Shown here: piece by piece, positions 30,946 through 57,445 of the stretch
How positions within the stretch are numbered: position 1 is the stretch's first letter
How the letters are laid out: the number at the start of each line of letters is the position of its first letter
From: Isurus oxyrinchus
Lineage: Eukaryota
Length of the DNA: 64,000 nt
Assembly: GCA_026770705.1 (NCBI GenBank)
Contig: JANJGN010000022.1
Span: forward strand, 3,038,001 to 3,102,000
Reading direction: 5' to 3'
Notes under the pieces: model-generated
Told to the model about the DNA's origin: nothing
Databases searched by the model: none
The model's input: only the letters and a program-made list of their open reading frames with translations
Program-made: the position numbers and the translations under genes

Positions 30946-32122
30946 TGACTCAGCAGTTCCTGGTGGAAAACAGCATATCTCAACTGCTCCCTGAACTCAA
31001 CCGAGTTAAAAGCCAGCTCATAACCGTGTGTGGGTGGAATGCTCTTGTTGCATAATTGTCGGATACGCTGATTGGTACAGTAATGAGTTGTACAGACTAT
31101 GGAGGTGTCAGCTTTCATCTGAGGTCTGGGCAGATTCGCTGATGATTTAGAAGGTTTCAGGAAGTCGAAGGGAACAAAGTAGATAGAAATTATTGTAAAA
31201 TCAAAATACCACGGATGCTGGAAATCTGAAATATAAGCAGAAAATACTGGAAATACTCAGCAGGTCTGGCAGCATCTGTAGAGAGAGAGAAAAACAGTAG
31301 ATGTTTCTTTAGGTTAACCTTCTAATGAAAGGTCATTGACTTAAAACAAGAAACTATTTCCGCTGGTTTAGGAAGACTAGGACTAGGGGGCAGTGTCTAA
31401 AAATTAGAACCAGCCCTTTCAGGAGTGAGATTAGGAAACACTTCTACACACAAAGGGTGGGGGAAGTTTGGAACTCTCTTCCACAAATAGCAATTGATAC
31501 TGGATCAATGTTCATTTTCAATCTGAGATTGATATATTTTGGGTAACTAAAGCTGTTAAGGAACACGAGGCAAAGCAGGTATATGGACTTCAGTCACAAA
31601 TCAGCCACAGCTTTATTGAATGGCTCAAAAGGCTAAATACACCTTCCCATTTCTATACTCTCTCTTGAATTGTGCTGTGGGATCTCTTACATACAACTGA
31701 GAGTAAAGACCAGGCCTCGGTTCAACATCTCAGCTGAAAGGCCACACCTCAGAAAAATTCCTCTAGAAGAGCAGGGGAGGTCTCCTTGGTGTCCCTCAAC
31801 CAACATCACTAAAACAGAAACAGAATTACCTGGAAAAACTCAGCAGGTCTGGCAGCATCGGCGGAGAAGAAAAGAGTTGACGTTTCGAGTCCTCATGACC
31901 CTTCGACAGAACTGTTGATTTGGATTTCCAGCATCCGCAGTTTTTTGTTTTTATCACTAAAACAGACTATCTGGCCTTATCACATTGCGGCTGTGGGATC
32001 TTACTGTGCACAATCTGGCTGCTGCATTCCCTACATTACAATTATAACTACATTTCAAAAATATTTATCTAAAATACTTAATTGGTTCTGAGGTTGTGAA
32101 AGTCAACTTCCTAAACTGTTTA

Positions 32123-32323
<201 letters not shown>

Positions 32324-33153
32324 TCAGAGTTGGAGCAGAGCCTGTACTGATTCCCCCTCTTCCCACTCCGCCCCACTACCTAAACCTGCCCCCTAACTAC
32401 CGAGACCCAACCTAACCCTCCCCCCACTGTACAAAGCGTTGGAGTTCATTTTGAGAAGGATAGAATTGACAAGGTGTTACGTTAAACTTGTATCGCACCT
32501 TGGATAGACCACACTTGGAATTCTGTGAACAAGTCTGGTTTTCATGTTATGACAAAGACGTGGGTGCTGGAGAAGGTTCAAAACAGATTCAGTAGGATGA
32601 TACCAGAACTGAGAGGTTTTACCGATCAGCTGAACAAGCTGGGGCTCTAAGGGTTAAGCAAGGGAATCAAAGACTATTGGGGTTAGATAGGAATGTGGAA
32701 ATCAAAACACAAGATTGGCCATGATCTTACTGAATAGCAGAGCAGGCTCGAGGGGCCGAATGGTCTATTCCTGTTCCTATTTCTTATGGTAGAGAAGATG
32801 TTTCCATTTGTGGGGAAGACTGTAACTAGGGATCATCAATATAAGACAGTCACTAATAAATCTAATTGGGAATTCAGGAGAAACTCCTTTACCCAGAGAG
32901 AGTGGGGAGAATGTAGAACTCACTACTATAGGAGTAGTTGAGGTGAATAATATGGATACATTTAAAGGGGAAGCTGGATTAACACAAGGGAGAAAGGAAT
33001 AAAAGGATATGCTGATAGGAAGAGATGAGGTTGGGGTGGGAGGAGGTTCCTATGGAGCATAAACACCAGCATCAACTTCATGGGCCAAATGGCCTGTTCC
33101 TGTGCAACAGGAGGATCAGGAAACCTTTACGATGTTCTTTAGTCTGTCTCTCA

Positions 33154-33432
<279 letters not shown>

Positions 33433-35494
33433 TCAAAATCATTGGTAACAATGCACCAGACAGTCTGACAAAAACAGCACAGTGACCAACAGGAGCACTG
33501 GTTACAGCAAAGACAGAGGGTCAGAGCAAAGGGTGTGTTACAGTCAGGGTGACCTTCAGCAGCCCCTCCAATGTCGGGAATTCCCCCCCCCCCCCCCCCC
33601 CCCCACGGGCTATCAGAACAGCAGTGACAGTACCTGGCGGAGGGTGCGCAGGGCAGCAGGAGGATACTGTGTGTAGGGAAGATCAGCCCAGGCCAATTCT
33701 GTGGACAGAAAAAAAAGACAGACACACACACACATACAAACTGCCAGGAGTCACTGGAAGCTGATCGGTAGCAGGATTCCTGGTCGATTTCTCCCCACAC
33801 CCATTCCAATTGTTGCCCATCTGGTTCACAAAACTGAAGTAAAGCAGCACAGCTGGAGAAGCTAGGCTCGGGGAGAGGACCATTCCGACTGGAAGCAAGA
33901 AGCCCAGAAAAGCCTGACGTTGCCAGATTAGACAGCACTTATCTGTGAGAGGCTCTCATGGACAGACTACCTTCCAAAGGGGCACCAGTGAGAAATTCCT
34001 CTCTAACTTCTGAAGCTAATCACCGAATGAGAGTTCCTGGACTCTGCTTGCTCTGGTATTGCAGGATTTCCCCACATGGCCAGAACAACAGCTTCCCTCC
34101 TATAGTCACAATGTAGAGAGCAGTCAGTCAAACTTACAACTTGAATTTATATAACACAAACACAACAATACCTGGAAAAACTCAGCAGGTCTGGCAGCAT
34201 TTGTGGAAGGGAGCACAGTTCTGTTGAAGAGTCATGCGGACTCCCTTCCACAGATGCTGCCAGTTTTTCCAGGTATTTTTGTTTTCGATTTCCAGCATCT
34301 GCAGTTTTTTGCTTTTATCATTGAATTTATACCGTGCCTTTAATGTAGGATAATGTTCCAAATAATCTGACAGGTACAATTACCAATTAGACTAGCAAGA
34401 AAAGGAGATAATGGGACAGGTGATCAAAAGCTTGATCAGGCCCAGGTTATAAGGAGTATCTTGAAGAAGAATTGATGGCATTGTCCATCAATGGTGGAGC
34501 AAATAAAATTGGTGATGCACAAGAGGCCAGAATTAGCAGAGTGCAGGTTTCTCAAGAACTGTGAGGCTGGAGGAGATTAGAGAGATAGGAAGGGGCAGGC
34601 CGTGGTTGGGGGGGGGATTTGAAAACAAGGATGAGAATTTTAAAGTGTTGTCAGGCCGGGAGCCAATGTAGGGCAGTGAGCACAGGGGGCATAGGGAATG
34701 GGACTGGTTCGAGTCTTGGTACAGAGTTTTAGATGACCTCAAGTTTACAGAATGTGGGAGATCAGCCAGGAGTGTGTTGAAATAGACGGATAAAGAAGTA
34801 ATAAAGGCACGAATGAGAGTTTCGGCAGTGAATAAGCCGAGGCAAGAGCAAATACATCCAATGTTACAAAGATGGAAATGAGCAGTCTTAGTGATGGTGC
34901 AGATGTGTGGTTGGAAACAACTTGGATCAGCAAGGGCATGAAGGGGCTGAATGGCCTCCTGTGATGTAACCATTCTATGATGTATGAAATATGGCACCAA
35001 AGTTTTTGCACACTATTCTGGGGAGGCACACCAGATGAGTGTAGGACATAGCAGAGTGAGGTTCCCTGTCTGTGTAACCACTGCCTCAGTTACTCCTCCA
35101 ATACACAGCCTACGCCACTCCCAGACACTCATCCGGAAAGGGCAGATTTTAAATCTTCTCAGTCAGGGATTTGGGGCCACTGAGTCTGCGCAGAGGTGAA
35201 TGCAAGATCGGAGAGACTCGCCCTCCCCAAGAACAGGGTTCGGATAGAGCCCGGGTATAATTAACTGTGATAGTGGGGGAGGTGAACACACACCATCTGG
35301 GGTTAATCTGGAAACTGTAGAGAGGTGGTGGGGAGTGAGCTGGAAACAGTGACCCTCTCTCATCATACACAATGCAAGATACTGTAGCAGCTTGACCTCC
35401 CTTAAAGCCACAGTTTACTTAAAACAGCTGAATTAGCCAAGTTCTCTTCGTGAGATTCCCAAATTCCACCAGCTAAGAACTCAGTCCTATTTAC

Positions 35495-35808
35495 CTGAAC
35501 CAGCCAATAGAAGAACAGCAAAGGGACAGTCACGAGGAGGAAGGCTGGACTCAATGAACAGCAAATGAGCAGGACTGTCAGTGTGTAAAAGCAGCAGCGA
35601 ATCCAAATGTCAAGTTCCTCTGGAATGCTGACATCAATCGTATCCATATCTTTACCAAAGCGATTCAGTATCCTCCCAGTGGGAGTCAATTCGAAGAAGG
35701 ACAGAGAACAACAGAGGATATGCTCAAGCATATTGAGGTGTATCAAACTTGAGGCCCTGAGCATACAGTATGCTCGGCTCAGACAGCAGGCCAATAACAT
35801 GAAGAGCC
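35495..35808 (-). CDS. ABCC3: ABCC3 exon 23 paralogue C (GLFMLLACCLSRAYC...FFELTPTGRILNRFGKDMDTIDVSIPEELDIWIRCC...FFYWLVQ)
   Basis: Pyrimidine tract, gcacag|GG acceptor, CAG|gtaaat donor; 314 nt, phase 1 to 0, no stop. Confidence 0.85.
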
Positions 35809-37062
35809 CTGTGCGAGGAGAAGAGGGAGAACAATGAAAGGATACAGAAAACACAAAGGGCACACATGTATCAGGGAGACAGAAAAAAAAAGCAAGGAAG
35901 ACTTGCATTTACATAGCGATTTTTGCAAACACAATGTCTCAAAACACTTCACAGCCAATGAAGTACTTTTTGAAATGTAGCCACTTGTAATGTAGGAACT
36001 GCAGCAGTTAATATGCACACAGCAAGCTCCCACTAAACAGCAATGTGATAATGATCAGATAATCAATTTGATTTTGAGATTTTGATTGGCAGAGTTGGTC
36101 CCAGGCTAGGGACTGAACAGCAAGTGTGAGCACACAGGTAAAGATTCAGGTGTGGAAATGGGATAATCCCATAACCCCCAATCACTCACTCCCCAACAAC
36201 ACTACCAAGACCAGCCAAGCAACAGGAACCCAACTGTTAAAGGGCCTGGGGGCTGCTCAGCCCTTACTGTTAAAACCTTGCTCCCTTCTCAGCAAGCATT
36301 CTGGAAAATACATTCCCCTTTCAGATACAGTGGGTTGATGGTGGCGAAGCGATTGGGAGAAGTGGAGAATAACTGTGTTTATAGGGTATAGGCAAGAGAG
36401 AAAAATGAATAGAGGGAGAAGGGGAGAGAGTGAGATGGAGTGAGACACGGCGATTGAGACAGAAAAAGCTTGAGCAAGGGACTTGCTTAATCCAGTTCCC
36501 CGCTAATCCTGTGTGAAACTAATTATCACTGCTGGTTTCAGTTTCCTGCAACTAGTGGTTTTGTTTCTCTAACCCACCCACACATTCACTCACCTCCAGC
36601 CTCACTGTCCTCATGAGATGAGGTTTACTCACAGTCAGGTGCCTTGTGGGTGGGTGGGGAGAAACTAACAGGGCCAGTTACTGGCACCATGTCAGACACT
36701 GGCACCAGGTCCAAAGTGCAGAGATTAACAACTTGAAAGAAAAATTAAAATGAAATTTAACAAGTGGAGCTGTGCTGACAACTGTTCAAAATAAACACAG
36801 AACTTATTTTCACTCTGAGCCTGGGATTTATTCTCTCTTCTGAAACTGATGTCTTGTGTTGGGCTCTAGTTCCATGCTGCTCTCTCTCTCACTTCAGCCC
36901 AGTATCCATTCCAAATGTTTGAGTCACCAATCCAAACTCAGCACAGGCTAGGGATGAGGTCTGGGCCTATGCTAAATTCTGTGTGTTGCAGTTACTGGAT
37001 TAACCAGCAGAGAAACTACTTCTAATGGGCAGGGTCCATTTCTCAGGAGACACCCCTAATAC

Positions 37063-37376
37063 CTGAAGGGAAAAGTACAGGCAAGCGATTGGAACAGAGG
37101 GCAGAAGACAGAGCGGAATGGAGTAAGCCAGCACCAGCACAGTGGATAAGACGTCAAAGAAGCACAGCAGCAGGTCCTCCACACACGCTGGGATCCGATC
37201 ATCAATCGTCTCCATGTCCTGTGAGAAACGGTTCAGAATTCGTCCAACTGGCGTCAGCTCAAAATAATGTGCAGGACAGCGGAGAGTTTGGTTAAGCAGG
37301 CGATCATGCAGGAGACAGGAGGCACGAATACAGCAGATTGCAAACAGCAGTTGGGACTCGGTGTAGGACAGGAAGC
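37063..37376 (-). CDS. ABCC3: ABCC3 exon 23 paralogue B (GFLSYTESQLLFAICC...YFELTPVGRILNRFSQDMETIDDRIPACVEDLLLCFF...CLYFSLQ)
   Basis: tttttgtccaacag|GC acceptor, CAG|gtatta donor; 314 nt, phase 1 to 0, no stop. Confidence 0.85.
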
Positions 37377-37494
37377 CTGTTGGACAAAAACCAGGTGTTA
37401 CTGCCCTGATGTATCACCGCAGGCTTTGAACAAGCACCAAACAAACCCAGTGTTCTCTCCTCCTAAGGGCTCAACTCTTATTTAGATGCAACTG

Positions 37495-38055
37495 GTAGAG
37501 AGAACTTTACTCTGTATCTAATCCCGTACTGTACCCGTCCTGGGAGTGTTTGATGGGGACAGTGTAGAGGGAGCTTTACTCTGTATCTAACCCCGTGCTG
37601 TACCTGTCCTGGGAGTGTTTGATGGGGACAGTGTAGAGGGAGCTTTACTCTGTATCTAACACCGTGCTGTACCTGTCCTGGGAGTGTTTGATGGGGACGG
37701 TGTAGAGGGAGCTTTACTCTGTATCTAACCCCGTGCTGTACCTGTCCTGGGAGTGTTTGATGGGGACGGTGTAGAGGGAGCTTTACTCTGTATCTAACCC
37801 TGTGCTGTACCTGTCCTGGGAGTGTTTGATGGGGACAGTGTAGAGGGAGCTTTACTCTGTATCTAACCCTGTGCTGTACCTGTCCTGGGAGTGTTTGATG
37901 GGGACGGTGTAGAGGGAGCTTTACTCTGTATCTAACCCTGTGCTGTACCTGTCCTGGGAGTGTTTGATGGGGACAGTGTAGAGGGAGCTTTACTCTGTAC
38001 CTAACCCTGTGCTGTACCTGTCCTGGGAGTATTTGATGGGGACAGTGTAGAGAGA
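37495..38055 (+). repeat. 69-bp tandem repeat (CTGTATCTAACCCCGTGCTGTACCTGTCCTGGGAGTGTTTGATGGGGACAGTGTAGAGGGAGCTTTACT), ~8 copies
   Basis: Directly visible. Confidence 0.95.
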
Positions 38056-41000
38056 ATTTTTTTTTAAAAATTCAGACTAGAGAAACAACAGTATAGGAGG
38101 CCATTCAACCCACCGGACCTGCAACAATTCTACCTCTTAAAGAAGTATCTATTTGAGTCCCATTTCCATATTCTTCTTTCTCAGGTCCTTATCAAACTCC
38201 CTTTTAAATAATTACATAGGATACACTGCCCAGAAGCAGTCCATTCAGCCCAACTAGTCTATGCTGATGTTTCTGCTCCACTTAATCCTCCTGCCATCTT
38301 TCCTCATCTAAATTTACCACCGTAAACCCTCTGTTTCCTTCGCCCTCAAATGCTTGTCTATCTTCCCCTTAAATGTATCTACACCATTTGCTTCAACCAC
38401 TCACTGTGGGAGTGAGTTCCACATTCTCACTACTCTCTGGGTAAAGAAGTTTCTCCTGAATTGCCTATTGGATCTCTTGGTGACTATCTTATATCAATGA
38501 CCTCTAGTTCTGCTCTTTCCCACAAGAAAAAACATTCTCTGTCTATCTACTCTGTCAAAACTTTCATAATTTTAAAGATCAGGTCAGCCCTCAGCCTTCT
38601 TCAAGAGAGGAGACAGCCTCTCAATCCTTTCCTGATATGTCTGGTATCATCTTAGTAAATCTTCTCTGCACCCTCTCCAGTGCCTCTAATACCCTATAAT
38701 ATGGTGACCAGAGCTGCACATGACAACTTCAGTGTCGCTGGGTCAAAATCCTGGAACTCCCTCCCTAACAGCACTGTGGGTGTACCGACACCACATGGAC
38801 TGCAGTGGTTCAAGAAGGCAGCTCACCACCCACCTTCTCAAGGGCAATTAGGGCTGGCAATAAATGCTGGCCCAGCCAGCGACACCCACATCCCATGAAG
38901 TTCTCCAAGTGCTGTCTAACCAAGGTTTGTTACAGGATTAGAATATCTTCCCTACTTTTCAATTCTGTGATCAAATCTGATCATTATCACTTTAATGCAG
39001 AAGAACATAATCTAAACTAAAAATGACTACTGTTCATGAAGAGGCTGTTTATGAATAAGCTGTTTTACAACCGATTAACACTACAAGTCCATCTGAATAT
39101 CTCATGAGAGTGAACATAAATTTAAGTTGTGCCTTTCCAACTTTTGATGTTCCAGTCTCTGCCTCAGTTGCTCCTTGTGGTAAAATTCTCTTTGTTCTGA
39201 TAAACCTTCCGAGTGAAAACATTTCTTCTAATGTTTCCTTCCTAGTGTCTCTCAGTGATAAAATCTTCAGTCTGTGGCCCCTGTAAGAGACCACATGACC
39301 TCAAATGCTCGTCTATCTTCCCCTTAAATGTAAGGAATGACCTCTTACTATTTACCCTCTCAAAACCTTTCAACAGTTTGAATACCTGCATTAGATGGGG
39401 TACGGGTTACTATGGTTCTGTTACTGGATTTGTAATCCAGAGAACATGAGTTCAAATCCCAGCATAGCAGTTAAAATAAAATCTAAAAAAAAGGCTAGTC
39501 TCAGTGACCACGAAGCTGTCAGATCATAAAAACCCAACTGGCTCATGAATGTCCTTTCGGGAAATAAACCTGTCATTCTTAGCCAGTCTCGGCCTATACA
39601 GGGATTCCAATCACATACCAACATGGTTGACTCTGAGCTGCCCTAACAAGCCACTCAGTTTCTATCGAAACCACCACCAGTGGTTTAAGAAGGTGGCTCA
39701 TCATCATCTCAGGGCAATAAAAGCTTGCCTTGCCTGTGACACTCACATCCAGAGAGCGAAATTTAAAAAGATTCTCCTTCACCTTCTCTGTTCTGCTATA
39801 CAAGTCCCAATTTTGAGTCTTTCCAATCACTAAGTTCTCTGAATTCTTTCCATTCCTCTAATATTAGGTTAGGCACCAACACGAGAACTTCCATTGTGCA
39901 TTCTTGGATCTGATTTCCAATTGGAGTAGAGGCAACTGTCTAACCTGACCCACTAGACCGGACTGGGTCGGTCCATCATTTACATCCCAACTATCTCCCA
40001 CAGGTCAGGTTACATTAGAAGTAGGAGTAGGCCCCCGAAGCTTGCTCCGCCATTCAATAAGATTATGGCTGATCTTCTTTTATAACTCCACTGTCCTATT
40101 TGATCTTCGTATCCCTCAATTCCCTCAGAATCCAAAAATCTATCAATCTCTACCTTGAATATATCCAGAGGCTGAGCATCCACAGCTCTCTGGGATAGAG
40201 AATTCCAAAGGTTCACAATCCTGTGAGCGAAGGAATTTCTTCTCATCTCAGTCTGAAATGGCAGATCTCCTATCCAGAGACTATGACCCCATGTTCTAGA
40301 CTCCAGCCAAGAAATAATCTCGTAGCATCGACCCTGTCAAACCCTCTCAGAATCTATTTCAATAAGATCACCTCTCATAGGGTGATTACCCCAGAGTGTT
40401 TGTGATGTCCATGCTCAGATGTGGGAGCCATTCCTTCACCTCCCATTTGAAACAGGAAGGATTGAAAGGCTTCCTCTACACCAATCCACTCACCAACTCT
40501 GCCTTACTTACAGGTGTCTCCCCCTGGTTTGGGATGGGGGGTGGTGGGGGGGTGGGGGTGGTGGGGGAGGTGTTTCTTCTCTGATTTTCTTCCATCAGGG
40601 CTCATTCCCCTCTCGATTTAAAAGCTCTCTGCATCACGATGTGACAGAGGCTGGAGACCTCACAGCTTATAAACCCAGAATGTCATCTGCAGACCAAATT
40701 CTTTTCAGATATCTGAGTGCAAAGGAGGCTGGTATTCTTTCACAAAACAGACCCCAATTTAACTCACCATCAGCAAACCTTTTATGTTTGGTTAAGTAAC
40801 TTGAACATTTACACATCCAGCATTGCTAAAATCTCCCAAATTCCCTGCAATTTTTTTTTTACCAATTCCCTGAATGCTCGAATACTGTTATGAAGCATTT
40901 AACCAGGGTGAAAGCTCCAAAAACCCCTGGCTCTGCCTGACAGGGACAAATGCAGTTCCCACCTGTCAGAACGTAAAGGGTTTGCTGCATAACAAATTAT

Positions 41001-41067
41001 TTCACAAAACATTTACCCAACTGAGGTGATTTTAAACAATCACCCATCCAGGAGCCATCAACATTGT

Positions 41068-43295
41068 GTGAGAGAGGGAGACAGAGACTCAGAGAGAGAG
41101 AGGGACTCAGAGAGAGAGAGAGAGAGACTCAGAGAGACAGAGAGACTCAGAGAGAGAGAGAGAGAGAGAGACTCAGAGAGACAGAGAGAGACTCAGAGAG
41201 ACAGAGAGACTCAGAGAGAGAGAGAGAGAGACTCAGAGAGACTNNNNNNNNNNNNNNNNNNNNNNNNNNNNNNNNNNNNNNNNNNNNNNNNNNNNNNNNN
41301 NNNNNNNNNNNNNNNNNNNNNNNNNNNNNNNNNNNNNNNNNNNNNNNNNNNNNNNNNNNNNNNNNNNNNNNNNNNNNNNNNNNNNNNNNNNGAGAGAGAG
41401 ACAGAGACACTCAGAGAGAGAGAGAGACTCAGAGAGAGAGAGAGAGAGAGAGACTCAGAGAGAGAGAGAGAGAGACTCAGAGAGACAGAGAGACTCAGAG
41501 AGAGAGACAGAGAGACTCAGAGAGACAGAGAGAGACTCAGAGAGACAGAGANNNNNNNNNNNNNNNNNNNNNNNNNNNNNNNNNNNNNNNNNNNNNNNNN
41601 NNNNNNNNNNNNNNNNNNNNNNNNNNNNNNNNNNNNNNNNNNNNNNNNNNNNNNNNNNNNNNNNNNNNNNNNNNNNNNNNNNNNNNNNNNNNNNNNNNNN
41701 NNNNNNNNNNNNNNNNNNNNNNNNNNNNNNNNNNNNNNNNNNNNNNNNNNNNNNNNNNNNNNNNNNNNNNNNNNNNNNNNNNNNNNNNNNNNNNNNNNNN
41801 NNNNNNNNNNNNNNNNNNNNNNNNNNNNNNNNNNNNNNNNNNNNNNNNNNNNNNNNNNNNNNNNNNNNNNNNNNNNNNNNNNNNNNNNNNNNNNNNNNNN
41901 NNNNNNNNNNNNNNNNNNNNNNNNNNNNNNNNNNNCTCAGAGAGAGAGGGAGAGAGACTCAGAGAGANNNNNNNNNNNNNNNNNNNNNNNNNNNNNNNNN
42001 NNNNNNNNNNNNNNNNNNNNNNNNNNNNNNNNNNNNNNNNNNNNNNNNNNNNNNNNNNNNNNNNNNNNNNNNNNNNNNNNNNNNNNNNNNNNNNNNNNNN
42101 NNNNNNNNNNNNNNNNNNNNNNNNNNNNNNNNNNNNNNNNNNNNNNNNNNNNNNNNNNNNNNNNNNNNNNNNNNNNNNNNNNNNNNNNNNNNNNNNNNNN
42201 NNNNNNNNNNNNNNNNNNNNNNNNNNNNNNNNNNNNNNNNNNNNNNNNNNNNNNNNNNNNNNNNNNNNNNNNNNNNNNNNNNNNNNNNNNNNNNNNNNNN
42301 NNNNNNNNNNNNNNNNNNNNNNNNNNNNNNNNNNNNNNNNNNNNNNNNNNNNNNNNNNNNNNNNNNNNNNNNNNNNNNNNNNNNNNNNNNNNNNNNNNNN
42401 NNNNNNCNNNNNNNNNNNNNNNNNNNNNNNNNNNNNNNNNNNNNNNNNNNNNNNNNNNNNNNNNNNNNNNNNNNNNNNNNNNNNNNNNNNNNNNNNNNNN
42501 NNNNNNNNNNNNNNNNNNNNNNNNNNNNNNNNNNNNNNNNNNNNNNNNNNNNNNNNNNNNNNNNNNNNNNNNNNNNNNNNNNNNNNNNNNNNNNNNNNNN
42601 NNNNNNNNNNNNNNNNNNNNNNNNNNNNNNNNNNNNNNNNNNNNNNNNNNNNNNNNNNNNNNNNNNNNNNNNNNNNNNNNNNNNNNNNNNNNNNNNNNNN
42701 NNNNNNNNNNNNNNNNNNNNNNNNNNNNNNNNNNNNNNNNNNNNNNNNNNNNNNNNNNNNNNNNNNNNNNNNNNNNNNNNNNNNNNNNNNNNNNNNNNNN
42801 NNNNNNNNNNNNNNNNNNNNNNNNNNNNNNNNNNNNNNNNNNNNNNNNNNNNNNNNNNNNNNNNNNNNNNNNNNNNNNNNNNNNNNNNNNNNNNNNNNNN
42901 NNNNNNNNNNNNNNNNNNNNNNNNNNNNNNNNNNNNNNNNNNNNNNNNNNNNNNNNNNNNNNNNNNNNNNNNNNNNNNNNNNNNNNNNNNNNNNNNNNNN
43001 NNNNNNNNNNNNNNNNNNNNNNNNNNNNNNNNNNNNNNNNNNNNNNNNNNNNNNNNNNNNNNNNNNNNNNNNNNNNNNNNNNNNNNNNNNNNNNNNNNNN
43101 NNNNNNNNNNNNNNNNNNNNNNNNNNNNNNNNNNNNNNNNNNNNNNNNNNNNNNNNNNNNNNNNNNNNNNNNNNNNNNNNNNNNNNNNNNNNNNNNNNCT
43201 CAGAGAGAGAGACTCAGAGAGAGAGACTCAGAGAGAGAGACTCAGAGAGAGAGACTCAGAGAGAGAGAGAGAGAGAGAGAGACTCAGAGAGAGAT
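41068..43295 (+). repeat. GA-rich microsatellite (GAGACTCA/GAGA) with large N gaps
   Basis: Visible; mostly unresolved assembly. Confidence 0.95.
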
Positions 43296-43899
43296 ACACG
43301 CACAGTTCACAGTTGGGCTAAAAAGGTTAAAACAGAAAGTTAGAAGGATGGGTAGCACACACTTGGGTGAAAAACACTGTTTTGTGTTTAAAAAAAGCCC
43401 TTTTGAAAATGTTGGATTAGATCAGTTTGCTGTTGGTTTCAGTAAATGGTCCTTGTTGTCACACACTGCACTGTATCCAGCCTGCACAGAGACCCAGAGT
43501 TTGCACAACACATCCTGCACTCTCTGCGCATAGGCCAGAACTTAATGCCAAGGAATTTTGGTCTAATGGCACTGCCTCTTACTCACCCCCATGCTGTGCA
43601 CAGTCCCTTCACCTAGCGCCACAGTGACTGATGTTTATGGCTCCCAATGGACCTGGCCAGTCAGAGACTTGTGCAGAGGGGCTGTAAGTGTCAGCCGAGT
43701 CCAAGCTGGAAGTCAGTGTTACCCGCACACACGCACATTCTGTGGTTCAAGGGGTTTGTGACGGGACTGATCAGTTCCCTCACAGAACTAAGACACAGCA
43801 TTAATGCCACCGGGTGAATGAATGGTGTGTTACTCTGAGCCACTCGTATCTGACACCATTGATTTTGAGAATGTCCCCAAGTGTTGCCCAGTTTTTAAA

Positions 43900-46610
43900 A
43901 ATATTTGTTTGTTGGATTTGGGCATCGCTGACTGGCCAGAATTTATTTCCCATCCCTAATTGTCCTTAAGATGGTGGTGAGCGCTTTCTTGAACCGCTGC
44001 AGTCTGTGCAGTGTAGATACACCCAAAGTGCTGCTAGGGAGGGAGTTCCAGGATTTTGATCCAATGACAGTGACAATGAAGGAACGCGATATATTACAAA
44101 TCAGGATGGTGAGTGGCTTGGCAGGAACTTCCAGGTGGTGGTGTCCCCATTATCTATTGTCCTTTTCCGTCTAGGTGGTAGAGGTCAAGGGTTTGGAAGA
44201 TGCTGTCAAAGGAGCCTTGGTGAGTTCCTGCAGTGCATCTTGTAGATGGTACACACACTGCTGCTACCTTATAGAGTCATAGAGGTTATAGCCCAGAAAA
44301 AGGCCCTTCAGCCCATCATGTCTGCGCCGGTCAAACAAGTACCTAACTATTCTAATCCCATTTTCCAGTACTAGGCCCATAGCCTTGTATGCCATGGCAT
44401 TGCAAGTGCACATCCAAATACTTCTTAAATGTTTTGAGGGTTTCTGCCTCTACCACCCTTTCAGGCAGTGAGTTCCAGATTCCCACTACCCTCTGGGTGA
44501 AAAAAATTCTTCCTCACATCCCCTCTAAACCTTCTGCCCATTACCTTTAACTTATGCCCCCTGTTTATTGACCCCCTCCACCAAGTGGAAATGTTTCTTC
44601 CTGTCTACCCTATCTATGCCCCTCATTATGTTATACACCTCAATCATGTCCCCCCTCAATCTCCTCTGCTCCAGGGAAAATAACCCCAGTCTATCCAATT
44701 TCTCCTCATAACTAAAGCCCTCCAGCCCAGTACATCAGTACAAAAGATAAGGCTGAAGCATTGGCAACAATCTTCAGCCAGAAGTGCTGAGTGGATGATC
44801 CATCTCAGCCTCCTCCGGAGGTCCCCCAGCATTACAGATGCCAGTCTTCATCCAATTTGATTCACTCCATGTGATATCAGGAAATGGCTGAAGGCACTGG
44901 ATACTGCCAAGGCTATGGGCCCTGACAATATTCCAGCAATAGTACTGAAGACTTGTGCTCCAAGAACCAGCCACACCCTAGTCAAGCTGTTCCAGTACAG
45001 CTACAGCACTGGCATCTACTCAGCAATGTGGAAAATTGCCTGGGTGTGTCCCGCCCACAAAAGCAGGACAAATCCAATCTGGCCAATTACCACCCCATTG
45101 GTCTACTCTCGATCATGAGCAAAGTGATGGAACGTGCCATCAAGCGGCACTAACTCAGCAATAACCTGCTCACTGACGCTCAGTTTAGGGTCTTCCAGGA
45201 CCACTCAGCCCCTGACCTCATTACAGCCTTTAACATGGACAAAAGAGCTGAATTGCAGAGGTGAGGTTAGTGACTGCCCTTGACCGAGTGTAGCATCAGA
45301 GAGCCCTAGCAAAACTGAAGTCAATGGGAATTGGGGAAAACTATACATTGGCTGGAGTCATACCAAGCACCAAGGAAGATGGTTGTGGTTGTTGGACGTC
45401 AGTCATCTCAGCTCCAGGACATCACTGCAGGAGTTCCTCAGGGTAGTGTCCTTGGCCCAACCATCTTCAGCTGCTTCATCAATGACCTTCCTTCCATCAT
45501 AAGGTCAGAAGTTTGGTGAAGATTGCACAATGTTCAGCAGCACTCGTGACTCCTCAGATACTGAAGCAGTTCACGTCCACATGCAGCAAGACCCGGACAA
45601 CATTCAGACTTGGGCTGATAAGTGCTAAGTAACACTGGTGCACACAAGTGTCAAGCAATGACCATACAACAAGAGCGAATCTAACCATCTTCCCTTGACA
45701 TTCAATAGCACTACCATCGCTGAATCCCTCACTATCAATATCCTGGGGATTACCATTTACCAGAAACCGAACTGGACTAGCCACATAAATACTGTGGCTA
45801 CAAGAACAGGTCAGAGGCTAGGAATTCTGTGGTGAGTAACTCACCTCGTGAGTCACCGAAACATGTCCACCATCTACAAGGCACAAGTCAGGAGTGTGAT
45901 GGAATACTCCCCACTTGCCTGGATGAGTGCAGCTCCAGCAACACTCAATAAGCTCAACACCATCCAGGACAAAGCAGCCCACTTGATTGGCACCTCATCC
46001 AACACCTTCAACATTCGCTCCCTCCACCACCAGCACACAGTATTAAAAGTAGATAAATCTCCAGGCCCGGATGAAATTCATCCCAGGCTGTTGAGTGAGG
46101 CCAGGGAGGAGATAGCAGGGGTGCTGGCAATAATTTTCTATATCTCTCTGGCCACGGGAGGAGTGCTAGAGGACTGGAGGACAGCCAATGTGGTAACGTT
46201 ATTCAAGAAAGGAGGATAGGATAAACCTGGGAACTACAGACCAGTCAGTCTAACCTCAGTGGTGAGGAAACTATTGGAAGCAATTCTGAGGGATTAATCT
46301 GTAGAATTAGTCTACACTTGGAGAGGCAGGGATTAATCAAGGACAGTCAGCATGGTTTTGTTCAGGGGAGGTTCTAATTGAATTTTTCAAAGAGGTGACC
46401 AGGTGTGTAGATGAGGGCAATGTATTTGACGTAATCTACCTGGACTTCAGCAAGGCTTCTGATAAGGTCCTGCATAGGAGACTGATGACGAAGGTAAGAG
46501 CTGATGGGATCCAAAGCAATTTGGCAAATTGGATCCAGAATTGGCTGAGTGGCAGGAAGCAGAGGGTGATGGTTCAGAGGTGTTTTTGTGACTGGATACC
46601 TGTGTCCAGT
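43900..46610. mobile_element. Nested, partly inverted CR1/L2-clade LINE fragments
   Basis: AGVPQGSVLGPTIF, KSPGPDEIHPRLL, YLDFSKASDKV. Confidence 0.85.
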
Positions 46611-46729
46611 GTGATAGGCAGAGCACCTTTTTGGCTCGATGGCAGCATCCTGTTAGTGGTGAATACCACTTGTGTTGCTACTGCATAGTAGCAGCATGAA
46701 GGGTAATCAGAGGTAGACTGGGCGCTTTT

Positions 46730-47620
46730 CAGGGCTGAAAGTGACAGCCTTAGGCCCATGAGTTTGTGTGATATACAGCACAAAATGGTCTGATCAGGGT
46801 AGCCATTATCCTGCAGGATGCCTTTGATGCCCCTATTTCAGTATCAAGCTTACATGGTGAACAAATGGTTCAGGTCCTATTAATAAGGTTGCCGATAAGA
46901 CCGATCGTATGTGTGGAACTGTTAAGAATCCCAACGCATATATTGACCAGTAAAGGTCAGCTTGTGGTAGACCGTGGTAGAGAACCCCCTGATGGATTTC
47001 TCAACTACTGCATCAAGGAAGGGGAGTTAATTTGACTGCTCCATTTCAATGGTGAATTTGAGCACAGTATAGAACCCCATTCAGACATGTAAAGAAATTA
47101 TTACATGCAGCTGTGGATTTAAATATAACAAATGTATCATATACATATCGGAAATATGCGAGGGGTAGGAAGTTAGGTGTCATTTCATTGAAGATACATT
47201 TCTCATGGAACCCAACAAAGATATTTGCGAGAGCTGGCCTAGAGGGGATCCCATGACAGCACCATCTCATTGGGCAATCATAGTGTCATGAAAACTGAAC
47301 TCAACTGCGTGAGTTGCCGAGTTCATAAGTTCAATGAATACCGATTCACACAATGGTGGTGGGTCTAGATCACCGTGATATAGTGCCGCAGCGTAAATAT
47401 CTATGTCTTCCTTAAGTGGGGACATTGGTGAATAGGCTAGCAATGTCAAATGAGCACATGGACACAGCATTGCTATCGATATGCAAGTCCTGTATGGTCT
47501 TCGCAAATGTGAAGGAATCCTTCACCCTGTATCAGGAAAACTCGCTCAAAACTGGTTGTAACAATTGGCCCAACTATTTGGCCAATTCACGTTATGCAGA
47601 ACTAGTCATGGGTAAGATGA
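46730..47620 (-). mobile_element. Decayed Penelope-like RT fragment
   Basis: LANIFVGFHE and AYFRYVYDTFVIF, in broken frames. Confidence 0.65.
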
Positions 47621-48822
47621 GTGCAAGACAGAAAGCTTCAACAAAAAAAATCTCTTTTTACAGCAATACTCGAGTATTGACTGTCAGGCTGTTGGTTGAC
47701 TAGCCCATGGGACAGCTCTCCCAATTGTGGCACAAGCCCCCAGATGTTCCCCCGCCCCCCCACCCCCTCCAAGACCAGAGCCAGTTTTCCTCATCCCAAG
47801 TTAATACAATGTATTAAATGCCATAAAACAATGTACAAAGTACAATTTCTGGAGCTAGTTTCTGCTGTTTGACTTATCTGTGACACACATGGGTGTGCGT
47901 GTTATAATCCCCATTTTACAGGACCGGGGATTAGACTTGGGGGTAGATAGATCTACATGGCTCCATTTCACCTCAGACTTACCTAATACACAAAGGGACT
48001 GTGGGCAGAAAAGAGTGTCACAGCATTAGCACCAATTCTCCAAACCACACTCATTCTGAGTGTAACTTTGCTAAAAATTCACATGCGTTGGGCCTGTGCT
48101 GTGGGGTGCTTGAGTTCTGGATGCTGATATAATGAGCATATCCCTCAGACACAGTGGCTGGGCAGAGTGAGGTAGGTGGGCGTGCAGGGGGTTCACTGTC
48201 TGGGGTATAGCCTGGCTGGAGAAGGTACATGTCATGACACCAAGCTGATTGTCAGTATGTTAAATTAACAGACAACAAAAAGAAATGTGAGATACACCAT
48301 TCCACAGCCTCACATTTTCTCCAGTTACTTCACAGCTAGAAAGTGATGGTCACATTCAGACTACAATGAGTAACTTTGTGTTGGCAGAGAATAGAAGGTG
48401 ATTCACAAACACTGACAACACCAAACCAAGCAAAATTATGCAAAAGAGAAACACAAGCAAACGTGAGGGAGCCTCAGTGTCAGCCACATTACTGAATTTG
48501 ATTTTTAGAAGAGACATGATCACATTAGTGTGTCCCTGATTGCATCTCTAATATGTTAATCCAGCTCCCCCACACTGTCATTCAGTAATCCCTCTCCCCA
48601 GAGCACCCTGTGTTACTGAGTGTATCGCTACTTATGTTAATCCGGCTCAATCATTCCCCAGAATTAGGAGTAGAGTTTGTCAATTTGAATTGGAATTCGT
48701 TGTCACTTTGAGACGCTCTGACAGTGAGGCTCCCTCTTCCAAAAAGAATAAACTTTTGGCCGTTCCATCATCCTTTGCACCAGTGTGTCCGTAAGAAAAT
48801 GGAGAGGTGACTCAGGAGATAC

Positions 48823-49134
48823 CTGTACGAAGAAGTACACAATGGCCAGTGGCACGATAAGCAGAGTGAACCACGGGGTACTGGCTGTTACTACTATCAT
48901 GGTGGATAGGGAGACAAAAAAACGTCATGAGGAACATCTGGAAAGTCAGCGGAATCACTTCATCAATCACGTTCACGTCCTTGCCGAAGCGATTGATGAT
49001 GCGTCCAATGGGTGTGGTGTCAAAGAATGCCTGCGGTGTGTGTAACTTGTTGTCCAGGAGCCGTGCGTGGAGCTGTTGAGCAGCCCCCAGGCCTCCAAAT
49101 GCCAATGTGAAGGAGGAGGTCATAACTAGGATCC
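48823..49134 (-). CDS. ABCC3: ABCC3 exon 23 paralogue A, canonical-like (GILVMTSSFTLAFGG...FFDTTPIGRIINRFGKDVNVIDEVIP...VYFFVQ); apparent +1 frameshift in an A7 run
   Basis: cacag|GG acceptor, CAG|gtatct donor; 312 nt as written, in frame at 311 nt if run 48916-48922 is A6. Confidence 0.9.
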
Positions 49135-49224: not shown

Positions 49225-49830
49225 TTGCCCCCACCAACCTTACACCTACCCTGCCACCCCAGCCCTCCCCCACCAACCCCTCCCCGCTACCCCTCCCCCA
49301 CCAACCCCTCCCCACTACCCGTCCCCCACCATCACCGCTACCCACCCCCCACCAACCCCTCCCTGCTACCCCTCCCCCACCAACCCCTCCCCGCTACCCC
49401 TCCCCCACCATCACCCCTACCCATCCCCCAGCAATCCCTCCCCGCTACCCCTCCCCCACCATCCCCCGCCAACCCCTCCCCCACCATCCCCGCTACCCCT
49501 CCCCCACCATCCCCGCTACCCCTCCCCCCACCATCCCCGCTACCCCTCCCCCACCATCCCCGCTACCCCTCCCCCCACCATCCCCGCCAACCCCTCCCCC
49601 ACCATTCCCGCTACCCCTCCCCCACCATCCCCGCCAATCCATCCCCGCCAATCCCTCCCCCGCCAACCCCTCCCCCACCATCCCTGCCAACCCCTCCCCC
49701 ACCATCCCCGCCAACCCCTCCCCCACCATCCCCACCAATCCCTCCCCCACCATCCCCGCTACCCCTCCCCCACCATTCCCGCTACCCCTCCCCCACCATC
49801 CCCGCTACCCCTCCTCCACCATCCCCTCCT
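49225..49830 (+). repeat. C-rich ~23-bp minisatellite (CCCCGCTACCCCTCCCCCACCAT); G-rich on the ABCC3 transcript
   Basis: Visible tandem units; explains the Pro-rich ORFs. Confidence 0.92.
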
Positions 49831-50313: not shown

Positions 50314-50521
50314 CTTGTGTGAAGCCAAGTGCCGCGTACACTCCTACCCGCATGTACGTTTGGTGCTGTGTCCCGTTGACGACAGGGTCGTTGGTCCAGG
50401 CGCTTAGCCAGAAGCTGGCACCAATCGCTGCAGCATTCTGGCAGCAGTACAGGATACAAATCACAACAGAGATGAAGGGACCGACTGCCTTCAAGTACTG
50501 CCAGAACACAATCAACTTAAC
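50314..50521 (-). CDS. ABCC3: ABCC3 exon 22 (VKLIVFWQYLKAVG...FWLSAWTNDP...RVGVYAALGFTQ; TM12 to start of TM13)
   Basis: 208 nt, ends in phase 1 (CAA G|gtaagg). Confidence 0.95.
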
Positions 50522-52371: not shown

Positions 52372-53930
52372 CATAAGACCATAAGACATAGGAGCAGAAA
52401 TTAGGCCATTCAGCCCATCGAGTCTGCTCCGCCATTCAATCATGGCTGATAAGTTTCTCAACCCCATTCTCCCACCTTCTCCCTGTAACCTTTGATCCCC
52501 TTACCAATCAAGAACCTATCTATCTCGGTCTTAAATACACTCAATGACCTGACCTCCACAGCCTTCTGTGACAATGAATTCCATAGATTCACCACTCTCT
52601 GGCTAAAGAAGTTTCTCCTCATCTCTGTTCTAAAAGGTCTTCCCTTTACTCTGAGACTGTGCCATCGGGTCCTAGTCTCTCCTACTAATGGAAACATCTT
52701 CCCCACGTCCACTCTATCCAGGTCTTTCAGTATTCTGTAAGTTTCAATCAGATCCCCCCCTCATCCTTCTAAACTCCATCGAGTATAGACCCAGAGTCCT
52801 CAAACGTTCCTCATATGTTAAGCCTTTCATTCCTGGGATCGTTCTCGTGAACCTCCTCTGGACCCTCTCCAGGGCCAGAACATCCTTCCTGAGATACGGG
52901 GCCCAAAATTGCTCACAATATTCTAAATGTGGTCTGATCAGAGCCTTATAAAGCCTCAGCAGCACATCCCTGCTTTTATATTCTAGTCCTCTTGAAATAA
53001 ATGCCAACATTGCATTTGCCTTCCTAACTACCGACTCAACCTGCAAGTTAACCTTAAGGGAATCCTGGACTAGGACTCCCAAGTCCCTTGGCACTCCAGA
53101 TTTCTGAATTCTCTCCCCATTTAGAAAATAGTCTATGCCTCTATTCTCCCTACCAAAGTGCATGACCTCACACTTGCCCATGTTGTATTCCATCTGCCGC
53201 TTCTTTGCCCATTCACCGAACCTGTCCAAATCCTTCTGCAGCCTCCCCGCCTCCTCAATAGTACCTGTCCCTCCACCTATCTTTGTATCATCTGCAAACT
53301 TAGCCAGGATGCCCTCAGTTCCTTCATCTAGATCATTAATGTATAAAGTGAAAAGTTGTGGGTCCCAACACTGACCCCTGCAGAACTCCACTAGTCACCG
53401 GCCGCCATCCTGAGAAGGACCCCCTTATCCCCACTCTCTGCCTCCTGCCAGTCAGCCAATCTTCTATCCATGCTAGTACCTTGCCTCTAACACCATGGGC
53501 TCTTATCTTACTGAGCAGCCTCCTGTGCGGGCACCTTGTCAAAGGCCTTCTGGAAGTCCAAGTAGATAACATCCATTGACTCTCCTTTGTCTAACCTACT
53601 CGTTACCTCCTCAAAGAATTCTAACAGATTTGTCAGGCATGATCTCCCCTTGATGAAACCATGCTGACTTTGCCCTATTTTACCATGCACTTCCAAGTAT
53701 TCTGAAATCTCATCCTTAATAATGGACTCTAAAATCTTACCAACGACCGAGGTCAGGCTAATTGGCCTGAAATTTCCTGTCTTTTGCCTCACTCCCTTTT
53801 TAAACAGGGGGGTTACATTAGTGATTTTCCAGCCCTCTGGGACCCTCCCTGACTCCAGTGATTCCTGAAAGATCACCAATAACGCCTCCACTATCTCTTC
53901 AGCTATCTCCTTCAGAACTCTGGGGTGTAT
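52372..53930 (-). mobile_element. Relatively intact CR1 LINE ORF2 3' half
   Basis: NFRPISLTSVVGK, YLDFQKAFDKVP, AKFADDTK, FFSQRVVNLWN; tandem TCTTATG-type tail. Confidence 0.93.
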
Positions 53931-53952
53931 TTCACCACATTTTTCCTTCTTT

Positions 53953-53991
53953 AGTTCTGAAGAAGAGTCATACAGACTTGAAACGTTAACT
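53953..53991 (+). ncRNA. Minimal type I hammerhead ribozyme motif in a Penelope-type terminal repeat
   Basis: AGTT-CTGAAGA-A-GAGTC-ataca-GACTT-GAAA-CGTT-AACT: stem I, CUGANGA core, stem II, GAAA, palindromic ACGU stem III. Confidence 0.6.
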
Positions 53992-54164
53992 CTGTCTTTC
54001 TCTCCACAGAGGCTGTCAGACCTGCTGAGTTTTTTCAGCAAGTTTTGTTTTTATTTCAGGTTTCCAGCACCAGCAGTATTTTGCTTTTATCTGAAATACA
54101 ACTGAGCCGTTTGCTCCCACAGCAGTCACTACGCTTCAAAATGACTTTATTGGCTGCAAACATA

Positions 54165-55490: not shown

Positions 55491-56362
55491 TGGCTGTAAA
55501 TTGTTTTGGAATTTCTTTGAATGATTTCTTTGAAATCAAACTTCTTTGGATTGACCCAAAAACTTCACTAACTTTAGGGAAGGAAACCTGCCATCCTTAT
55601 TTGGTCTGGCTTTATATGTGATTCCAGTCCCGCACCAACATGGTCAACTTTTAAATTTAAACAGCTTACCACCACCTTTACAGGGCAACTAGGAATAGAC
55701 TATAAATGCCAGTGATGCCCACATCTCAAGCATTGACAGCAACTTATATGTATATAGCATCTTTAATGCAATAAAACATCCCAAAGCACCTCACAGGAGT
55801 ACAATAAAACAAAATGTCACTCGGAGTCACATTAGAAGACCTTAGGTCAGGCGACCAAAAGCTTGGTCAAAAAGGTAGATTTTAAGGAGTGTCTTAAAGG
55901 AGGAAAATGAAGTAAAGTGGCAGAGAGGTTTAGGGAGGAATTCCAGAGCTTGTGGCCCAGGCAACTGCAAATATTAAAACCAATGAATTCAATTTCAAAA
56001 CATATCATAAATGGATTTGAACTTATGGGTTACTGGTCATATCATCCTATACCATTCAGCCATATACAGCTGGTAGGAGTTAGTGGATTGAGATCAGGAG
56101 CAAGGGAACTGATTGATGTTTGTCCCAATTATTGCAGTTGTAGTTCTCCCTCCTGCTGCCCCCTAGCTGGATTCAACTAACTCAACACAGAACAGGATCA
56201 AAACTGGGATCTTCCTGTTCTGTGACACTCAGTACCACACCGATGAGACAATGCAGCCACTGACCTACTTGAAGGAGCTCTGGCACCAGCTTTAAGATTC
56301 TCCAGACATCAGCTGTGCAGCTCCAAGTCAATGGATAGTGTGGTACAGAACTGTAAACTCAC

Positions 56363-56468
56363 CTCATGAATTGTTTCCTTGTCTCTGCTGCTGCTGAGGG
56401 CTCATCACTCAGGTCAATGTGGTTACTGAGGGTATCCTCCCCAAGAAACTCTTGATCTTCATCCAGCA
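56363..56468 (-). CDS. ABCC3: ABCC3 exon 20 (LDEDQEFLGEDTLSNHIDLSDEPSAAETRKQFMR; NBD1-TMD2 linker)
   Basis: 106 nt, cacag|...AG|gtgagt, phase 1 to 2; EDTLSNH.DL..KQFMR is characteristic of MRP3 (from memory). Confidence 0.9.
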
Positions 56469-56855
56469 CTGTGGTACAAGGAAGCGGTTTAGTCACAATA
56501 GGAGAGAATCAGGCAGCGCTCTCCTGAGCAAGTAGTTACATGGTGTGAACATAGCAGAATCCTGTAACACTGGCCATGGAGAACCTTGCTGCAGGGACTG
56601 CATGGGGCAGTCACTTTGCTGTTGGCTGATAAGCTGGTTCAAAACTGACTAAAGATTGAAATTTCCATAGTGTGTTGATTTTGAACAGCATGAGACAGGA
56701 CAGTGGGAGAGTCACTGGTTCAGGGGAAAGTTCTGGATTAGAGAACATTTACTGGGAGACCAGCTGGTAACACTCCCTCCATCACTGAAACACAAATCAA
56801 TAGGAACACACTGCAGAGAACTGAATGCAGCCTTAGCTTGGCCTTCACTCAGCTC

Positions 56856-57445
56856 AGAAGGAGGGGGAGAGGGAGGGAGATGGAGGGTGGAGAGAGAGGG
56901 GGGGGAAGAGAGAGAGAGAGAGAGAGAGAGAGATGGGGAAGAGAGAGAGGGGGGAAAGAGAGAGGGGGGGAAGAGAGAGAGGGGGGAAAGAGAGAGGGGG
57001 GAAGAGAGAGGGGGGAAAGAGAGAGGGGGGGGAAGAGAGAGAGGGGTTGGAAGAGAGAGAGGGGGGGAAGAGAGAGAGAGAGGGGGGAGAGAGAGAGAGG
57101 GGGGAGAGAGAGAGAGAGGGGGGGAGAGAGAGGGGGGGAAGAGAGAGAGGGGGGGAAGAGAGAGAGGGGGGAAGAGAGAGAGGGGGGAAGAGAGAGAGGG
57201 GGGAAGAGAGAGAGGGGGGAAGAGAGAGAGAGGGGGGGAAGAGNNNNNNNNNNNNNNNNNNNNNNNNNNNNNNNNNNNNNNNNNNNNNNNNNNNNNNNNN
57301 NNNNNNNNNNNNNNNNNNNNNNNNNNNNNNNNNNNNNNNNNNNNNNNNNNNNNNNNNNNNNNNNNNNNNNNNNNNNNNNNNNNNNNNNNNNGAGGGGGGG
57401 GGAAGAGAGAGAGGGGGGGGAGAGAAAGAGAGAGAGCGAGAGACA
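56856..57445 (+). repeat. Purine-only GA/GGGGGGAA repeat with N gap
   Basis: Visible. Confidence 0.95.

Follow-up and report, generated by a model that had tools for sequence, protein, structure and literature searches.

Three copies of a membrane-domain exon in the shark ABCC3 (MRP3) gene: a probable ancient alternative pair and a diverged third copy

A stretch of 64,000 nucleotides of the shark Isurus oxyrinchus (GenBank assembly GCA_026770705.1, contig JANJGN010000022.1, positions 3,038,001 to 3,102,000 of the forward strand), referred to here as the window, includes the 3' portion of a gene of the ABCC transporter family that appears to be ABCC3 (MRP3). One exon of this gene, which would encode residues ~1025-1126 (human ABCC3 numbering), is found in three tandem copies, termed A, B and C. 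Going by Pfam coordinates and MRP topology, the encoded block presumably covers the end of transmembrane helix 13 (TM13), the cytoplasmic coupling loop, TM14 and the turn into TM15. We consider it likely that A and C form an ancient, mutually exclusive pair with A as the default and C as the minor alternative, and that B is a diverged third copy, which is little used. Exon A, the counterpart of the mammalian exon, would be included by default; C would occasionally join exons 22 and 24 in its place, thereby swapping the TM13-loop-TM14 module. The reading frame, at least, would enforce the exclusivity of this choice, and out-of-frame forms should decay. The pair would have been inherited by ray-finned fishes, which would still use it, and the A and C modules may differ functionally.

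One exon in three copies

The 3' part of the gene (residues ~876 to the end) was located by tblastn with two fish ABCC3 proteins on the minus strand, in exons from 56475 down to 19999. The constant exons are 46-91% identical per exon to bichir ABCC3 in this search, and the homologous proteins bear the name ABCC3 or the synonym canalicular multispecific organic anion transporter 2; judged by these similarities, the gene is shark ABCC3. Each other exon of this part was placed once and the exon under study three times. When the whole window was searched by tblastn with the peptides of all three copies, only these three places were returned (next best match elsewhere, E = 0.34), and the copies match one another with E <= 0.008, except for the weakest piece with E = 0.045. 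In one joint alignment, amino acid identity is 39% for A-B, 33% for A-C and 39% for B-C, and 20 columns are invariant among the three copies; by tblastn, B and C are 43% identical across 93 residues. The copies align to positions ~56-158 of the 274 positions of the Pfam profile ABC_membrane (cut-off 28 bits), with 50.3 bits for B, 60.0 bits for C and 42.6 bits for the first 72 residues of A. A fourth copy was not found in the sequenced part of the window, and there was no exon-like match on the islands among the N runs; a further copy hidden in the N gaps is possible.

The last base of exon 22, at 50314, is the first base of a codon (CACAAG/gtaagg; the slash marks the exon border), and exon 24 begins in phase 0 at 33354 (cag/CGGTTC). 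Each of the copies in between possesses a pyrimidine-rich tract, an AG acceptor followed by G, and CAG/gt at its end; the borders read cacag/GG...TACAG/gtatct for A, aacag/GC...TTCAG/gtatta for B and cacag/GG...TTCAG/gtaaat for C. Together with the first two bases of whichever copy follows, the G of exon 22 forms a glycine codon, and translation of B and C in the expected frame is open across 104 codons. When read in frame 0, the frame that would follow inclusion of another copy, C runs into a stop after 9 codons and B after 40. A phase-1 donor combined with a phase-0 acceptor requires an exon of 3n+2 nucleotides, and the inclusion of two such copies or of none therefore breaks the frame. Coordinates, strand and splice sites agree with those of a previous sequence-only reading, as do the fully open frames of B and C (314 nt each) and the frame shift caused by zero or two copies. 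That reading had also assigned a length of 3n+2 to every copy, in the case of A after correction of its A7 run. This is correct for B and C; A, with its 312 nt, would fit only with one base removed.

The additional base of A becomes apparent by comparison with the 103-residue A-type blocks of fishes, which imply 311 nt, and translations in frames 2 and 0 place the shift at the T7 run at 48916-48922. The most probable cause of this break is a slip of the assembly in the homopolymer rather than a real lesion. The N runs at 41244-43198 are all located within the intron between A and B and are not crossed by any reading frame; the exon order on both sides of them is consistent with one continuous gene. 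A further assembly gap of 148 N (57244-57391) lies upstream in the gene, in an intron near the exon at 56362-56475.

The scaffold gap between A and B/C and the frame break in A are what might be expected if the copies were due to an artefact of assembly or of haplotypes, if they were remnants of a whole-gene duplication, or if B and C belonged to another transcript. This is, however, highly improbable. Copies that are just 33-43% identical are not haplotypes, and no other ABCC3 exon in the window is duplicated; the latter point had been raised in the sequence-only reading, and the tblastn placements with the two fish proteins bear it out. Furthermore, fish gene models share the order A-then-C, B and C with their introns recur in independent contigs from a sister species, and RNA contigs of C and of exon 24 end at the C donor and at the exon 24 acceptor, respectively, as expected if the two were joined.

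Table 1. Exons of the ABCC3 gene around the three copies and assembly features between them (window coordinates).
Feature	Position	Strand	Remarks
Constant exon 22 (numbering of the sequence-only reading)	50314..50521	-	72% identity to bichir ABCC3 residues 959-1029 (tblastn)
Exon A, A-type version	48823..49134	-	312 nt; orthologous to the mammalian ABCC3 exon; presumably the default
T7 run within exon A	48916..48922	-	reading frame slips by one base here
Four N runs with short islands (assembly gaps)	41244..43198	.	in the intron between A and B
Exon B, third copy	37063..37376	-	314 nt, open, AG/GT sites; no orthologue or spliced RNA found
Exon C, C-type alternative	35495..35808	-	314 nt; orthologue of the alternative exon in ABCC3 isoforms of ray-finned fishes
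Constant exon 24	33155..33354	-	phase-0 start; joined to the next exon in contigs of 4 of 4 runs
Exon 25 (follows exon 24)	32175-32300	-	joint with exon 24 in RNA contigs

Intron 22 contains a minisatellite at 49281-49826 (~550 nt; 23-nt unit, ~22 copies, 81% matches), whose C-rich plus strand accounts for three long, overlapping, stop-free open reading frames at this site. In the pre-mRNA, the minisatellite is G-rich with runs of G4-G5 and is located ~150-690 nt upstream of the exon A acceptor. Intronic G runs can bind splicing factors, and the minisatellite might bear on the choice of exon A.

A and C as orthologues of a fish exon pair

When B was searched against 1.84 billion representatives, some of the highest-ranking matches were gene models to which it aligned two or three times in tandem. 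The model KAG7275222.1 of the teleost Coryphaenoides rupestris contains two blocks in succession, the first A-like and the second C-like. When the C-like block was used as query, 115 matches with E <= 1e-10 were obtained, 110 of which are ray-finned fish ABCC3 models with 67-83% identity; the other five are invertebrate or fungal. The C-type block of bichir retrieved 137 matches, and the 120 listed all come from ray-finned fishes, including bichir, reedfish and paddlefish. Five protein clusters with 42 members comprise 23 C-type and 16 A-type proteins as well as 3 that lack the region. A one-for-one exchange is indicated by pairs of isoforms that are each encoded by one gene: in all seven pairs tested (Polypterus, Erpetoichthys, Acipenser, Esox, two Gadus species and Triplophysa), the isoforms differ only in a block that comprises 104 residues in the C-type and 103 residues in the A-type isoform. 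Ten fish ABCC3 models hold both blocks in tandem, always A before C, which is the order seen in the window. These ten models (P0004, P0153-P0158, P0267-P0269), which sometimes include a read-through intron between the blocks, are misannotations that result from the presence of two exon versions.

In a maximum-likelihood tree of 67 segments, window A is the sister of all fish A-types (support 100/97) and window C the sister of all fish C-types (support 100/100), and both clades follow the species tree. In the joint alignment, identity is 63-71% between window A and 16 fish A-type exons and 48-61% between window C and 63 fish C-type exons; 9 of 13 residues diagnostic of the A-type are present in A, and 10 of 13 diagnostic of the C-type in C. 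Judged from these comparisons, A and C are the orthologues of the two exon types that are swapped one-for-one in ray-finned fish ABCC3 models, and because each of them is sister to the fish sequences of its own type, the pair arose before cartilaginous fishes and bony fishes diverged.

Among solved structures, ABCC3 is the best match of window A (65 bits versus at most 55 bits for others), and the A-type block of bichir reaches 131 bits with residues 1025-1126 of human ABCC3, compared to at most 81 bits with other ABCC chains. The C-type block of bichir, which is better preserved than window C, scores 76 bits with MRP1, 75 bits with ABCC2 and 72 bits with ABCC3 and hence has no specific counterpart among the solved mammalian ABCC chains. 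Window B and C themselves score best on ABCC2; however, an ABCC2-like nature of these copies was rejected, since the better-preserved bichir sequence is equidistant from MRP1, ABCC2 and ABCC3. No tetrapod model with a C-type block was returned by the protein searches, which could not show absence. A search for short proteins (57-182 amino acids) with the C peptide gave one match among 18 candidates, at 44% identity, and no shark C fragments; as the collection lacks the latter, the missing B fragments are uninformative with regard to expression.

In alignments with solved structures, residue 67 of the block corresponds to position 1092 of bovine MRP1, and is methionine in A, aspartate in B and isoleucine in C. 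Met1092 of MRP1 is presumably part of the lining of the substrate pocket.

RNA evidence for the use of A and C

RNA contigs of four runs (X1-X4) were examined on 32100-37600, a region that comprises B, C, exon 24 and exon 25. One of the run organisms matches the window, and the other, the sister species, is ~2% different in introns. In all four runs, a contig joins exon 25 to exon 24 on the minus strand across 851 bases with GT..AG ends, which identifies all of them as RNA. Depth ranges from 15 to 276 on exons 24-25 and reaches at most 19 on C and at most 5 on B, and long mRNA contigs of 3427 and 4960 nt have no piece on B or C. The depth gap and the composition of the long contigs indicate that the main mRNA in all four runs uses neither B nor C; it presumably uses A.

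Contigs that cover C stop at the C donor in two of the four runs and then continue with letters unlike the intron. Record 12 of X2 (343 nt, depth 18.9) covers 35810-35495 and has 27 letters past the C donor, and record 25 of X4 ends at 35495 with 20 further letters. On the other side of the putative joint, record 8 of X2 ends exactly at 33357 and thus comprises exon 24 plus the common CAG. As A, B and C all end with CAG, and exon 22 and the introns with AG, these contig ends are as expected for an assembler that works with 31-letter words and breaks at splice branches, and the branch points match those expected for 22>{A,C} and {A,C}>24. Mutually exclusive use of A and C is supported by these contigs together with the one-for-one isoform pairs of fishes.

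It is conceivable that B, and perhaps window C too, are decaying relics that are no longer translated, and that the C-containing RNA is splicing noise. Such a scenario would be in line with the cysteine content of B and C (8 and 9 residues, respectively, versus fish medians of 0 in A-types and 3 in C-types), with the loss of universally conserved residues from both copies, with the absence of splicing from the B contigs, and with the C contigs amounting to a small share of the depth of the main mRNA (19 versus 194 in X2 and 6.5 versus 196 in X4). It would have to explain, however, why the frames and splice sites of B and C are intact and why C, an orthologue of an exon that is kept and annotated in more than 100 fish models, retains most of the residues expected of it: of 27 columns that are at least 90% conserved in both fish types, 26 are kept in A, 23 in C and 19 in B, and the diagnostic C-type residues mentioned above are largely present. 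The comparison with the sister species points in the same direction, with 3 differences in ~316 bases of C (T93I, R17K and one silent) versus 26 in 1191 bases of the X2 intron contigs, although this contrast is not significant. Taken together, we regard this scenario as quite unlikely.

Several points nevertheless weigh against the reading of A and C as a working pair in the shark. Window C has lost 4 of the 27 conserved residues, including the proline of the R-x-P motif, and its losses and its 9 cysteines could reflect relaxed constraint. The partner of C past its donor would be exon 24, and the RNA contigs cover 32100-37600 only, so that the joints 22>A, 22>B and 22>C as well as the length of the T run fall outside. 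Moreover, the runs are recognized as RNA by their spliced contigs alone, and their tissues are not specified.

Exon B as a diverged third copy

Nothing above 51% identity to B, and hence no orthologue, was found among the 1.84 billion representatives. B is unplaced in the tree of 67 segments, where it has a branch length of 0.91, and is without supported relatives in a tree of 165 segments that includes all 150 matches to B. Approximately unbiased (AU) tests gave p = 0.40 for a position with the C-types, p = 0.24 for a position with the A-types and p = 0.05 for B as the sister of window C alone. The first two positions are thereby not rejected; the last value is borderline and disfavours B as a recent copy of window C. 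In simulations of drift by substitutions only, before counting insertions and deletions, an open frame survived in 17% of trials when identity to the ancestor had dropped to 65%, and in 6% when it had dropped to 43%. Because such drift rarely leaves the frame open, and because of the Pfam score and the conserved columns of B, it is concluded that this copy was kept coding for most of its history; a fairly recent retirement is possible.

The sequence-only reading had proposed an efflux pump with three switchable modules. In such a true three-way switch, B would serve as a third TM13-TM14 module, which would have to work in a tissue or stage that was not sampled. Several features of B would fit this idea: its 104 open codons are exactly the length of C, its AG/GT sites are intact, it scores well above the cut-off of ABC_membrane, and it keeps its 19 conserved columns despite an overall identity of only ~35-39%. 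In addition, the sister species retains B with a single conservative change seen (V94I), and the AU result against a recent copy of C implies that B was kept coding for long. The RNA contigs tell a different story. B is covered by low-depth contigs only, at a depth of 0-5 that equals the intron background, and its acceptor is crossed unspliced by record 7 of X1 and record 27 of X4. No spliced B contig was found on 32100-37600 in any of the four runs, two of which contain spliced C; contigs drop rare forms, and this is therefore weak evidence. The lack of an orthologue, the long branch and the smallest number of conserved residues of the three copies also speak against a working module, and the open frame carries less weight than it seems to, since a retired exon can stay open for long in slow genomes (59% of the drift trials at 5% neutral divergence were without a stop). 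A working three-way switch is thus doubtful, and B is more probably an exon that is seldom used or was retired not long ago than a third position of the switch in its own right. With regard to the three mutually exclusive versions of the earlier proposal, A and C are supported by the fish isoform pairs and the contigs ending at the C donor, and no such support was found for B. As to the RNA junctions that had been suggested as a check, the contigs ending at the C donor in two of four runs would fit 35495>33354, and B showed no spliced contig.

A broader version of the idea would place three interchangeable TM13-loop-TM14 exons in the ABCC3 of the ancestral jawed vertebrate, with sharks using all three (B in an unsampled tissue), ray-finned fishes having kept two and tetrapods one. 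We consider this unlikely. If true, ABCC3 would offer a natural series of module swaps for the substrate cavity and for the loop that couples an MRP pump to its nucleotide-binding domains.

Comparison with known exon switches

The closest counterparts of the A/C pair are the ABCC3 isoform pairs of ray-finned fishes such as Polypterus senegalus, Acipenser ruthenus, Esox lucius and Gadus morhua (X1/X2), which concern the same gene and the same exon position. The RefSeq models of these fishes, known here as protein models alone, contain two versions only, and nothing B-like was found in them. In mammalian ABCC3/MRP3, the A-type exon has its counterpart; according to the sequence-only reading, human ABCC3 has one such exon. 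A literature search turned up no publication on the switching of ABCC3 exons in fishes or sharks. Yue et al. (2017) reportedly described tandem exon duplication of MRP genes across many phyla and in chordates that diverged early, with late-diverging vertebrates lacking it, which may bear on the novelty of the pair. The statement of the sequence-only reading that the arrangement had not been described thus holds for the literature searched and not for the databases, in which the 110 fish models found with the C-like query already carry the C-type. The A/C pair itself is already in databases, the present analysis demonstrates its great age, and B is an unverified extra.

Outside the vertebrates, similar arrangements are known from long MRP/ABCC genes. 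Two papers describe a cluster of eight interchangeable, mutually exclusive tandem exons in Drosophila MRP (CG6214) and a comparable arrangement in C. elegans mrp-1 (PMC9741552, PMC6071210); the likeness to the window lies in the tandem, mutually exclusive exons. In the searches made here, gene models of cockroach, beetle, mosquito and hookworm contained 2-3 tandem copies of the same region of the second transmembrane domain, matching B residues ~8-83. The exon duplications of MRP genes are called independent between phyla in PMC6071210, with reference to Yue et al. (2017). In arthropods, competing intronic RNA pairings guide the choice of the exon, whereas in the window the frame rule alone could explain exclusivity. 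Among vertebrates, human ABCC9 is described in PMC9741552 as substituting a tandem-duplicated exon, thereby producing SUR2A and SUR2B. This is a homologous exon swap in a vertebrate ABCC gene as in the window; however, both the gene and the part of the protein are different. The swapped exon of ABCC9 is presumably the last coding exon.

The exchanged block contributes to the lining of the translocation pathway and includes the loop through which the membrane domain is coupled to the ATPase. Owing to this position, the A/C swap, kept for more than 400 million years, would be a natural experiment on the substrate choice of MRP-type pumps. The pair also bears on the gain and loss of alternative homologous exons. 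For annotation, it explains why fish models wrongly hold both exons, and it draws attention to a third copy in the shark lineage.

Intronic repeats and retroelements

Complementary sequences of 17-24 nt (83-88% complementary) flank the copies in the introns. Two pairs (34555-34576 with 36590-36611, and 35321-35339 with 36185-36203) would loop out C, and the segment 34944-34967, which pairs with both 38088-38111 and 38235-38251, would loop out B and C together. As candidates for a control of exon choice by RNA pairing of the arthropod type, these pairs are no more than a lead; they may be derived from repeats, as the contig depth there suggests repeated elements.

In all four runs, the summed contig depth is very high at 34124-34307 and 37436-37600 (about 7e4 to 1.4e6), with many loose ends. 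Both segments are highly repeated, transcribed elements, and one of them is located 60-220 nt upstream of the B acceptor. Retroelement fragments with similarity to RVT_1 are present in ABCC3 introns at 23299-24333 on the plus strand and at 52747-54041 and 60237-60881 on the minus strand; two of four RVT_1 fragments pass the Pfam cut-off, with 69.7 and 47.6 bits.

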